A DNA stretch of 64,000 bases from Lama glama. Taxonomy: Eukaryota. Of the stretch, positions 25,023 to 53,289 are shown piece after piece. A program made the position numbers and the translations under genes. Each line of letters begins with the position of its first letter. Within the stretch, counting starts at the first letter, position 1. A model generated the notes under the pieces. That model was not told the DNA's origin, did no database searches, and worked only from the letters and a program-made list of their open reading frames with translations. The DNA lies in assembly GCA_028534125.1 (NCBI GenBank), contig CM052821.1, positions 17,360,001 through 17,424,000 on the forward strand. Reading direction: 5' to 3'.

Positions 25023-25599
25023 GATAACTGAATAGATACACATAGATAAATAGTATTTCTATAGAGAAAATGATACATTTCTTAAGTGTTTTGAACTATA
25101 AGCCAGCGGAAGCTAGGAGTAGCTGGATAGCCCGTATCTTGAAAACATTGGCTCACGGTTTGTCCTAATACTTTGCCTTGTCTTTAAGTTCTCTTGGCCT
25201 CTCTGCCAGTGACTCATATTCTGTCCTCCTCTCCTGTGAGCTGGGGTAGGTGAGAAGGGCTGACTGTCTCAATGAAAAACAGGTACAGTCAGCAGTACAA
25301 CTCCATGTCCCACCTTTCTGAACTGAGCACAGAAGCCTGATGAGAGAGAGACCTGCTACCTTCTGCAGAGGTGACTCTGCAGGTGACAGAAAGACAATAA
25401 GCAGGGACACCCAGGGACTTGGCATGGATGCTACTTTGCCAGGATTCATACTCTTCTGTTCTCTGACCCTCTCTGCCTGGTGTGAGTAATTCATCTGCAT
25501 GGACATTAGGTGCCAAATGTCATTGCACACTATGCCTTCCCAGGTTCTGACCACAGGTCAGGCTCTTGCCCAATCTGCCACTGGCCGTTGAGCTATTAT
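25023..25599 (-). pseudogene. Degenerate remnant of the large second exon of the LAS2-like gene
   Basis: One frame reads RHSVQ*HLAPNVHADELLTPGREG (from 25537), aligning without gaps to LAS2 [24 protein letters not shown]; NDI appears in the +1 frame directly after RHSV. The same frame later gives YP(ATPSF)RWLIVQNT (25129-25085), then NVS after a 1-nt shift, versus LAS2 YPRWLTSQKSDLNVS. Multiple stops; boundaries are tentative. Confidence 0.5.
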
Positions 25600-37697: not shown

Positions 37698-38119
37698 TAC
37701 AGGCCGAGTCTAAATGAGCCCCATCAATTGAAGAAGTGTCGGGCTTGGGTCTCAGGGAGGCTGACCAAAGAATCATCAGCTGAGAATTTTGTAAAGACCC
37801 GAGGGGATTCTCAAAGGTATTAACGTCAAGGGCCATATCTCTCCCTCCCTTTGGACCTGTCTTAGGAGGTTCTCAGTGGTACTGACCCCTGGTCCTGTGC
37901 AGACTATGCTCAGGGCGATCTGATGACGGGGGAATAAATAGTACTGCTCTTTATTCTGAGTAAGGAAATCATACATTAGAGTAACAACAACAACGACAAA
38001 GATGCAGGCGAGGGTGACAGTGTAATGGCCGTATTCTCAACAGAATGAGTATAGCCCAGAATGAAAAAGACAAAGATCTGGAGTCATGGGTGATACACGA
38101 CATGATCACAGCAGCGACG

Positions 38120-38990
38120 CTTCATTCACTGCTTCGTTCTTCAATCAGACTTGACTGGGAACCCTCAGTGCCAGGTTTCTGGGGGGTTACAGTGGTAGAC
38201 AAGACAGTTTAGAGGGCCTTCAATCTTGTGGGGGGACAAGCCAGAGAACAGGTTCTTACAGAACAGTGTTGAATGCCACCCTTGGGGACGCTACAGGGAA
38301 GACACAATAGGAGCACCTACACTGGACTTTATGGAGAGGAAGAAAAGTGATGTCTAAATTGAGGCCAGAAAGAAGAGCTGACCAGAAGAATGGGGTGGTG
38401 AGGAGGAGGGAAGTCCAGTTAGAGGAAACAGCAGGTGAAAAGGTACAGAAGCAAGATGTGTGCTCTGCAGGTGGGGGCAGCTCTGGACAACAGGGCCAGG
38501 AGCACAGGGGGAAGGCAAGGAAGTGTGCGAGTATGTGTGTGTGGTGTGTGTATATGATGTATGGTGTGTGTTTGGGGGGTATGTGTGTGTGTGGTGTGTG
38601 TATAGGGTATGTGGTGTGTGAGTGTGTATGGGGGCTATGTGTATGAGACGTGTGATGTGTGTATAAGACGTGTGGTGTGTGTGTGTGTGATATGTATATG
38701 GTGTGTGTATATGGTGTGGTGTGGTGTGTGGCGTGTATGTGAGGGTGTAGTGTGATGGCAACAGAGATGAGAAACCGAAGCTAGATTGTTAAGTAGGAGC
38801 CAGATCACCAATTGCCTTGAGCCCGCATTAGGGAGTTGAGCCGTATTTCCGCGCCACTGGGAGCCATTACAGCACCTGCGGCACACAGTGACAGCAGCAG
38901 ATCTGTGCTTCAGGAAGCCCCTCGTGCCGCAGCGTGGGAACAGGCTGGACGGGACCAGGCAAAGCCCGGGGGGGGGCGGTTAAGAATCTA
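38120..38990 (-). mobile_element. LINE-2 fragment interrupted by a TG-rich low-complexity tract
   Basis: ttcattcact...gtgccagg...acaagacag...; continues ggagccagatcac...gggagccatt after the TG tract. Confidence 0.65.
38530..38756. repeat. Degenerate (TG)n/(GTGTG)n low-complexity tract
   Basis: About 225 bp of almost exclusively G/T/A dinucleotide-like repeats; explains the His/Thr-rich and Cys/Val-rich ORFs here. Confidence 0.9.
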
Positions 38991-39850: not shown

Positions 39851-41472
39851 TCATAAGAAAGTACAAACTCTACTCCCCTTTACAGAGAAGTGTCAAGAAT
39901 AATACTGATAGTGGAGTTAATGAGTCAAGAGGAAAGAGCAAGTGCCTGTCATTGACAGGCAATGCCATTCTGAGTCAAATGTCAGTCAGACAGTCTCTTC
40001 TCTGTGGATTCAAGGAGAAAAACCAACACAGAAAAACTCTACTACTGAACCTCAAAAGAAGAAGGAAAATCCTTGTCACGAAAACCAGCAGAATTACTGA
40101 ATAAATTACAATATATTTTGCACTTCAATTGCATAGATAATGTAGACACTCAAACCTTACTTTCAGACTCAATCCCCATATCACGGCTGCCTATTCATCA
40201 AACCGTGTCAAATACCATAACCAGTACAACTTAGCTGTGAGACCATGCCTCTCTCTTGCATGGGACTATGTCACATTTGTCCGAATCCTCATGTCACTCT
40301 CTGTTTCCTCACTTATGAGACAAGGAGAAGCTGTTTTGTGTACTCTAACTTTGCATATCAAATATAGCATGCAGTAATACGGTAAATTTCATTTTCATCA
40401 TAATCTAATATAAAAAACACTAAATACCACCTTACTTTTGTAATGCGGTTTTCCAATATTCTTCTGTGCATACTAACCTATAGTCTCAAAAAGACCATGT
40501 TTCATGGAGGAGCAGGCATTTAAAAATATTATTAAATTATAGCTTGAAATAATATAATATTTAATAATTTTAATAAAATTTTATTATCATATCAATACTT
40601 TTTATATTTAATTTAATATGGGAATGCTATTAAATATTTCATTTATTTATTAAAATTATTATTATTCTCATTATCCCTACTTATACGGAAAAAGGAAGTA
40701 ACTATCAGAGTTTATTTTCCCAAGGGTTTTACAGGCAGTTACAAATTCAGATTGACACCCAGTATTGCCTGCGTGGTGGTATTTTATTTCAGCTTCTTAT
40801 ACAAATGATGCTTCTTCAACGAGAACAGGAGTTGACTGATTTGATTTTTTCCGCCGTCTATATAATATAGAATTTAATAATTATGGAGATGGAGAGTTCT
40901 GTCTCCTCATCATACTGACAGAGAAACTAAAGCCCAGTGAGAGTAACTCTTCTATCTCAGCTGTCACTGGCCGAACGGGAGCCGGACCTCAAGTCCCTGC
41001 CTATGTGGCTGTGCTCACGGTGCTACAGAGAGACCCAGAGCCCCTGACAGCCACAGCCATTTACCGAGTGTGTTCACACACCCCGAGTTCCCACTGTAAC
41101 CTCGTGAGGTACGATACTGCTGCTGAATACTGTCCTTATTTTATAAAGGGGTAAGTGAATGCCACTTGGAGAATTTAAGTGACTTTAAAACACTTTCAGT
41201 CACAACGCCAAAGGCTTTATACCAAGGCCAGAACTTCTATGCTCTAAAATCAAGACGGGGATGTGTTTTCTCCAATTAATCTTCAATTCGAAGGAATCCA
41301 TTGCTGAAAAAGTTTTGGAAACTTAAAATTATATAGCAATCTGATAAAAAGTTCATGAATTGGAAGACAATTATTTCCCAAGGGGGAAGAAGTCTTTTAG
41401 ATTATATATCTTCTCAAAGCACCAGCTGTCTGCAGATAATTAAAAATTGAACTCAGAATAATGAAAGCTTAC

Positions 41473-41725
41473 CAGTGTTTAGTTTAGCAAGAAACTCAAG
41501 AGTGCTTGGGTCCAAGTTCACCTTTGTGTCATGAATACCAGGAAGCTCACAGCTTAAATGAAAATCATCAATGTAAGCTTCCAGGGCTTCGGAGGCAGAG
41601 GAATATGGCTTCTCTTTGTACTGGATAGAACCATCAACATTAAAGGAGATGCTGTTGAGGATTAAAGACGCTGGAACAGAAGGTTCAGAAGCGCTAAAGT
41701 GACGTTTCTTAACTGACTTTTCCAT
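41473..41725 (-). CDS. First coding exon of a LAS2/C18orf54-like paralogue (LAS2 N-terminal domain); exon 41473-41771
   Basis: Translation [84 protein letters not shown]. Its core [27 protein letters not shown] matches human C18orf54 [27 protein letters not shown] (recalled) at 19/27 positions. Acceptor ccttttttgtgttcag| before 41771; Kozak gccATGG at 41725, with an in-frame upstream ATG at 41755; phase-1 donor ACTG|gtaagc after 41473. Too divergent to be the mammalian orthologue. Confidence 0.85.
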
Positions 41726-41979
41726 GGCTTTCTCAAAATGAGCTGCAATGTCCATTCATTTTCCAAAAACTCTGAACACAAAAAAGGTACACATGGTTTC
41801 AGTTGAGAGGAACGGATGATAATACCCAGAATCCTTGCTAATCTTCATATCCCACGTATTTCCTTTTTACAAATGAAATTACTTTGTATCTCCCTTTATG
41901 TGCTTTGGATATTGAGTGCTCCAGCAATGTTTGTTGATTGACAGTCTCACTGACATGGCCACAAGTGTAAAAACATACT

Positions 41980-51598: not shown

Positions 51599-53289
51599 AT
51601 CAATATCATTAAAATGGACATACTGACCAAGACAATCTACAGATTTAATACAATCCCTATCAAATTACCCAGGACACTTTTCACAGAGCTAGAACAAACA
51701 ATCCTAAAATTTATAGGGAAACACAAAAGACCCAGAATTGCCAAAGCAATATTGAAGAAAAAGAATGAAGCTGGAGGAATAACCCTCCCAGACTTCATTC
51801 AATACTACAGAGCTACAGTCATCAAAACAGCAAGGTATTGGCATAAAAACAGACATATGGATCAATGCAACAGAACAGAGAGCCCAGAAGTAAACCCACA
51901 GACCTTTGGTCAGTCAATCTTTGACAAAAGAGGCAAGAATATAAAACGGAGAAAAGACAGTCTCTTCAGCAAGTGGTGTTGGGAAAACTGGACAGCAGCA
52001 TGTAAGTCAATGAAATCAGAACACTCCCTCTCTCCATACACAAAAATAAACTCAAATTGGCTTAAAGACTTAAATATAAGACAAGACGTGATAAATCTCC
52101 TAGAAGAAAACATAGGCAAAACATTCTCTGACATAAATCTAGTAATGTTCTCCTAGGGCAGTCTACTCAGGCTATAGAAATAAGAGCAAAAATAAACAAG
52201 TGGGACCTAATTAAACTTCTAAGCTTTTGCAAAGCAAAGGAAACCATAAGCAAAACAAAACGACAACCTATGGAGTAGGAGAAAATATTTGCAAATGATG
52301 TGACTGACAAAGGCTTAATTTCCAGAATATATAAACAGCTCATACAACTTAATAACAAACAAACAACCAATCCAAAAATGGGCATAAGATNNNNNNNNNN
52401 NNNNNNNNNNNNNNNNNNNNNNNNNNNNNNNNNNNNNNNNNNNNNNNNNNNNNNNNNNNNNNNNNNNNNNNNNNNNNNNNNNNNNNNNNNNNNNNNNNNN
52501 NNNNNNNNNNNNNNNNNNNNNNNNNNNNNNNNAAAAGTTCACAAATGATAAATGCTGAAGAGGCTGTGGAGAAAAGGGAACCCTCCTATACTGCTGGTGG
52601 GAATGTAGTCTGGTGCAGCCATTATTGAAAACAGGATGGAGATGCCCCCAAAAACTAAAAATAGACTTACCATATGATCCAGCAATCCCATTTCTGGATA
52701 TATTATCTAGAGGGAACTCTAATTTGAAAAGATACATCTACTCNNNNNNNNNNNNNNNNNNNNNNNNNNNNNNNNNNNNNNNNNNNNNNNNNNNNNNNNN
52801 NNNNNNNNNNNNNNNNNNNNNNNNNNNNNNNNNNNNNNNNNNNNNNNNNNNNNNNNNNNNNNNNNNNNNNNNNNNNNNNNNNNNNNNNNNNNNNNNATGG
52901 CTGGACCTGGAGATCATCATTCTAAGTGAAGTAAGCCAGAAAAAGAAAGAAAAATACCATACGATATCACTTATATGTGGAATCTAAAAAAAAAAAAAGG
53001 CACTATGAACTCATCTACAAAACAGAAACAGACTTGCAGATGTAGTAAACAATCTTACAGTTACCAGGGAAACAGGGTGGGAAGGGATCAATTTGGGAGT
53101 CTGAGATTGACAAATGTTAGTCACTATATATAAGAACAGATTTAAAAGTACAGGGAACTATGTTCAATATCTCATAATAACCTTTAATAAAGAATATGAA
53201 AACGAATATATGTATGTATATGCATGACTGGGACATTGTGCTGTACACCGAAATGGATACATTGTAACTGACTGTACTTCAATTTTAAA
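51599..53289 (+). mobile_element. Relatively young 5'-truncated LINE-1 (ORF2 C-terminal part plus 3'UTR)
   Basis: ORF 51614-52156 ([12 protein letters not shown]...[10 protein letters not shown]) is L1 ORF2; further ORF2 pieces (DLPYDPAIP); 3'UTR ends ...ctgactgtacttcaat; TSD aaaatcc(c)tcatttaa at 51583-51598 and 53290-53304; contains two N gaps and disablements. Confidence 0.95.

Follow-up and report, generated by a model that had tools for sequence, protein, structure and literature searches.

An alternative first coding exon of GRIP1 is probably a duplicate of the first exon of LAS2/C18orf54

The sequence analysed, called the window in the following, is a stretch of 64,000 nucleotides of the Lama glama genome (GenBank assembly GCA_028534125.1, contig CM052821.1, positions 17,360,001 to 17,424,000). 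Its minus strand contains an open reading frame of 100 codons counted from the first ATG (41755..41456), with a TGA immediately 5' of this ATG. A second ATG in the context aGCCATGG lies at 41725-41723 (-) and opens the conserved coding part of the exon (41473..41725, minus strand; MEKSVKK...FLAKLNT), which consists of 84 codons up to 41474 and a G at 41473; this G is the first base of a split codon, and the exon junction is thus phase 1. The splice donor GT follows at 41471..41472 (-) within CTG/GTAAGC: it was read from the sequence and agrees with the spliced homologues, and reading through it in the 100-codon frame yields further residues and then a stop. The stretch between the two ATGs (41726..41755, minus strand) encodes an in-frame extension of ten residues, and the NCBI models of the alpaca begin here. 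Upstream of the first ATG, the sequence reads as a short 5' untranslated part with a candidate acceptor (41756..41773, minus strand) made of a pyrimidine tract and CAG (ccttttttgtgttCAG followed by AG, the AG being at 41773-41772). Models or open reading frames of macaque and mustelids read continuously across this point, whereas the models of two bovids, Bos mutus and Ovis ammon polii, have upstream exons joined on. The 84-codon frame, the Kozak ATG, the phase-1 GT donor and the upstream AG that had been noted from the sequence alone (in the following, the sequence-only reading) are all present as described, on the minus strand.

The 84-codon frame by itself proves nothing, because open reading frames of such size are common in the window (15 have at least 110 amino acids): it is the homology, not the length, that lifts this frame beyond chance. 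There is no CpG island around the exon, and the GC content is 0.37-0.44. Two further features of the window are a 135-codon frame at 38354-38761 (-), which is a CA-rich low-complexity repeat (HTHT..., PHT...) and not a gene, and an L1 ORF2-like open frame adjoining a run of N that is either masked sequence or a gap (51614-52156, plus strand, and around 52400-52750).

A phmmer search of the exon peptide against 1.84e9 representative proteins returned 29 matches. Five represent this exon in other mammalian species (P0001-P0005, E-values between 6e-39 and 3e-12); we refer to these and to the exon of the window as GRIP1-type exons, for reasons given below. The remaining 24, from mammals, birds and reptiles, belong to LAS2/C18orf54 proper, either as proteins or as fragments (E-values between 5e-10 and 1e-3), and those that have a name are called LAS2. 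With LAS2 of alpaca as the query, tblastn finds 50% identity over 76 amino acids in the window (E 1.4e-12). A profile HMM was built from 24 full-length LAS2 proteins and run on the six-frame translation of the window with all filters off: it detects a single segment, 41725..41498 (-), that corresponds to HMM positions 1-80 of 540 (i-E 1.4e-16). The homology to the LAS2 N-terminus that the sequence-only reading had proposed is therefore significant both by phmmer (E 1.4e-8 for LAS2 proteins) and by the profile, and the LAS2 signature DGS..YK.K.Y.SAS.AL.AYIDDF is present in the exon peptide. Two other searches with the exon peptide gave nothing: the best hit of a Pfam scan was HEPN_RiboL-PSP at noise level (E 0.13), with the LAS2 domain PF15792 unmatched, and the ESM Atlas returned no usable match. 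In several birds (ratites, penguins and others), records named LAS2 and LAS2-like are found on different large scaffolds and encode near-identical proteins; these pairs may be Z and W copies or duplicate assemblies.

The similarity between the exon and LAS2 extends beyond the shared start MAKS.KK at one end and reaches the splice junction at the other. Upstream, it begins 5' of MAKS: the GRIP1-type exons resemble the marsupial LAS2 sequence MEI.AHFEKTMAK(P). Downstream, two LAS2 open reading frames that read through the junction (P0008 and P0016) and an exon-skipped isoform of the wombat (P0012) diverge just past KP(N/S)N, and the residue that follows KP(N/S)N in LAS2 is G, A or D, all of which have G-initial codons, that is, phase 1. 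Judging from these alignments, LAS2 exon 1 appears to share both the boundary and the phase of the GRIP1-type exon. Both the C18orf54-like start and the common phase-1 end of the sequence-only reading are borne out by the alignment and the LAS2 read-through frames. As the similarity spans the upstream stretch and ends at the same junction, the whole first coding exon seems to have been copied, together with its start region and donor.

The identity of the exon was resolved by P0003, the decisive match, a protein of 1126 residues: it matches the exon over residues 1-83 and is GRIP1 from there on (glutamate receptor-interacting protein 1; DESPYTKSASQTKPP... and PDZ domains), and its NCBI name is GRIP1 isoform X10 of the thirteen-lined ground squirrel. 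In blastp, the frame of 94 residues matches the N-terminus of the Vicugna pacos GRIP1 isoforms X1/X4/X5 (P0143-P0145) with 100% identity, its 84-residue part corresponding to residues 11-94, and it follows that the exon is already annotated. Residues 1-84 of P0003 were then used as query for related isoforms among proteins of similar length: 89 boreoeutherian GRIP1 isoform models begin with the exon and continue with DESPYTKSASQTKPP and PDZ domains. They represent about 45 species, among the named carriers primates, rodents, lagomorphs, carnivores, ungulates, a bat and a mole. Apart from a few records labelled 'hypothetical protein' or 'PDZ domain-containing protein', all bear the name GRIP1. 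Some are NCBI models, others are UniProt entries whose names do not mark them as NCBI isoform models, and at least one, the Pan troglodytes record 'GRIP1 isoform 10', was annotated by its submitter. All 89 have the same junction: the exon ends on N followed by S, T or R, and continues with DESPYT(K), or with EEFKGS where exon 2 is skipped. The terminal G of the exon, completed by AT or AA of the next exon, gives GAT (D) or GAA (E) and fits the phase of GRIP1 exon 2. Among the candidates from the same search there was neither a GRIP2 nor any other non-GRIP1 protein with a LAS2-like head. Thus, the 'uncharacterised' gene of the sequence-only reading is the annotated GRIP1 start of the alpaca, and we consider it highly probable (about 90%) that the exon is an alternative first coding exon of GRIP1 and an exon-level duplicate of LAS2/C18orf54 exon 1.

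Among sequencing runs labelled as RNA, the exon is represented by 0.34-0.37 of its sampled words; these runs include three annotated as 'reproductive system metagenome' and four metatranscriptomic ones. P0099, a Bos mutus GRIP1 model named 'hypothetical protein', has an extra exon after the LAS2-like one, and 32 residues of the window at 37875-37970 (-) match this extra exon with 50% identity (E 4.6e-6). The match is probably alignable intron sequence that was taken up by an ab initio model.

The join to GRIP1 could be an artefact: the exon might open a separate gene, a LAS2 paralogue 5' of GRIP1, and annotation might have wrongly fused it to GRIP1 exon 2. The exon does resemble LAS2 and nothing in GRIP1, and models of the Gnomon type can be chimeric. 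Moreover, tblastn finds no other GRIP1 exon in the window, including the 41 kb downstream of the exon, and the exon is probably far from GRIP1 exon 2; as exon 2 lies outside the window, the physical linkage to GRIP1 rests on public annotation. Several findings speak against this reading. The 24-protein profile, applied to all six frames of the window, detects nothing LAS2-like apart from this exon at E-values up to 100, tblastn with all collected LAS2 proteins (about 25) finds nothing beyond the LAS2-like exon, and no protein in the representative search joins a GRIP1-type exon to LAS2-like downstream sequence. In addition, the phase matches GRIP1 exon 2 exactly and the same GRIP1 join is present in about 45 species and comes from more than one annotation source (NCBI, UniProt and the Pan troglodytes record). 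An independent gene is hardly credible on this evidence. The claim of a paralogue of the whole LAS2 gene fails with it: exon 1 alone is present, profile and PF15792 find nothing more and, since the rest of LAS2 is absent from the window, exon 1 appears to have been copied on its own. A supposed fossil remnant of the large LAS2 exon at 25023-25599 is not supported, as neither tblastn with the approximately 25 LAS2 proteins nor the full-length profile finds anything there.

The remaining question regarding ancestry is whether the exon could be a fast-evolving orthologue rather than a duplicate. It could not: Vicugna pacos has a separate, genuine LAS2 (P0007/P0047 and cluster members), in which the Pfam LAS2 domain PF15792 occupies residues 161-235, and the earlier statement that the exon is not an orthologue holds. 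The GRIP1 isoform products are PDZ proteins, and the alpaca GRIP1 P0143 carries no PF15792 domain.

Conservation of the exon is unevenly distributed. The part shared with LAS2 is a core module of 32 residues (41555..41650, minus strand), and 13 columns are invariant across the GRIP1-type exons and LAS2: Y46, K47, Y51, S53, A54, S55, A57, L58, A60, Y61, I62, D64 and L67. This core is invariant even when compared with LAS2 of sauropsids. The flanks of the core are variable, with placental exons being 60-88% identical to the exon of the window (blastp table, human rows included). The coding part has exactly 84 residues in 21 of 22 species rows, a count that is biased upward because broken exons would not be annotated; the only exception is the bat with 81 residues, caused by an in-frame deletion of three codons. 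The start codon shifts between the two ATGs across species: in the horse and two muroid rodents (Peromyscus and Myodes) the methionine of MAKS is replaced and the upstream ATG is used. The upstream extension is present in carnivores, primates, horse, bat and rodents; in Bos it is in a different frame (MNGPCSPFEKAM). Two Logan open reading frames from ruminant-like contigs (P0004 and P0005) are 85-90% identical to the exon of the window and read as frameshifted copies; the frameshifts could be assembly errors or lineage-specific decay.

Such variability might indicate decay: the exon could be the relic of a LAS2 exon copy that enters some GRIP1 transcripts by accident and has no selected protein function. 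In favour of this, the flanks of the core evolve fast among placentals, the start codon is unstable, the ruminant-like frames P0004 and P0005 are shifted, and a CpG island is lacking. Against this stands the persistence of the frame: the placental orders that carry the exon diverged roughly 90 million years ago and the length of 84 codons has been kept across them, with the bat deletion as the sole indel, itself in frame, and with no change in the invariant columns of the core, whereas neutral sequence at the distance between rodents and ungulates would lose an open frame. We therefore regard a functionless relic as highly improbable.

To place the duplication in time, a phylogenetic tree was constructed from an exon-only alignment of 94 columns and 52 rows, with the human GRIP1 rows left out. 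The GRIP1-type exons form one clade with support 100/100, which in the maximum likelihood tree joins LAS2 between the therian sequences on one side and those of platypus and sauropsids on the other. From this position, an origin on the therian stem would follow, provided that LAS2 follows the species tree. Shared states weakly favour the same origin: the GRIP1-type exons have AYIDDF and MAK as in therians, versus AYIEDF and MAC/MAS in sauropsids. Every annotated carrier found with residues 1-84 of P0003 is boreoeutherian. The sequence-only reading had called the duplicate ancient, but this is not established: the maximum likelihood placement is the therian stem, but attachment to the LAS2 of placentals, marsupials, monotremes or sauropsids is in no case rejected by an AU test (p 0.33-0.45).

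The structure of the head was predicted with AlphaFold2 from an alignment of 14 rows. The model is weak overall (mean pLDDT 58.7) and contains a hairpin (residues 36-46) and a helix (residues 54-66); the highest block is 51-60 with a mean pLDDT of about 84, and elsewhere the values are below 70. The head is thus predicted to be a mostly disordered tail with a small hairpin-helix element, a putative docking module, that falls into the core shared with LAS2.

Taken together, these data suggest the following scenario. LAS2 exon 1 would have been copied, with its start codon and its phase-1 donor, to a position ahead of GRIP1 exon 2. The copy would be usable there because its phase-1 end on a G happens to fit GRIP1 exon 2. 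Transcripts starting at or just 5' of the exon would splice from the donor between 41473 and 41472 to GRIP1 exon 2, and the scaffold of seven PDZ domains would gain a head of 84-94 residues in place of the short heads of GRIP1a and GRIP1b; this replacement by a LAS2-type head is the step supported by annotation and sequence. The heads of GRIP1a and GRIP1b change targeting, and GRIP1b is palmitoylated. The LAS2-type head may tether the PDZ scaffold to a putative partner of the LAS2 N-terminus, and expression may come from a separate, CpG-poor and probably tissue-restricted promoter. More tentatively, the N-terminal exon of LAS2 may be a transferable and autonomous docking module, composed of the hairpin and an amphipathic helix, whose copy was placed ahead of GRIP1 exon 2 early in mammalian evolution; if so, LAS2, an orphan protein, and this isoform of GRIP1 would have a binding partner in common. 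We consider this possible, but less likely than not.

As a claim of gene finding, the exon is unimportant, as it is publicly annotated as a GRIP1 start in the alpaca and about 45 other species. Its homology to LAS2 is of modest interest, both evolutionary and functional: GRIP1 is a well-studied scaffold of synapses and epithelia, and one of its heads, itself unstudied, would derive from a copy of exon 1 of an orphan protein; the strictly conserved core suggests a partner common to the GRIP1 head and LAS2. A shared docking module, if true, would offer the first handle on the function of LAS2 and add a third functional class to the GRIP1 heads. A literature search found no paper that names GRIP1 together with C18orf54, and the homology may therefore be unreported; the exon itself is already known as part of GRIP1.

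The closest known systems are the other GRIP1 heads, LAS2 itself and captured exons in general. GRIP1a and GRIP1b are described as N-terminal isoforms of GRIP1 in the palmitoylation literature. As in these isoforms, alternative 5' coding exons on a common exon 2 provide the PDZ scaffold with different heads; the LAS2-type head differs from them in size (84-94 residues versus about 18), in being encoded by another exon and in having a homologue in LAS2. With LAS2/C18orf54 exon 1, the GRIP1-type exon has 40-50% identity and shares the MAKS.KK start, the stretch M[DE]I.AHFEK of marsupial LAS2, the core YK...Y.SAS.AL.AYI.D..L and the phase-1 end on a G. It differs in that the serine-rich stretch SSLLAS..S.S of LAS2 is shorter, and in that PF15792 and the conserved C-terminus of LAS2 are missing from both the window and the GRIP1 isoforms: full-length LAS2 has about 500 amino acids, whereas the window matches only HMM positions 1-80 of 540. 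The arrangement resembles exon shuffling or capture, in that a phase-compatible copy of a 5' exon is reused as alternative 5' exon of an unrelated gene, and it would provide a clean example of exon capture through phase compatibility.
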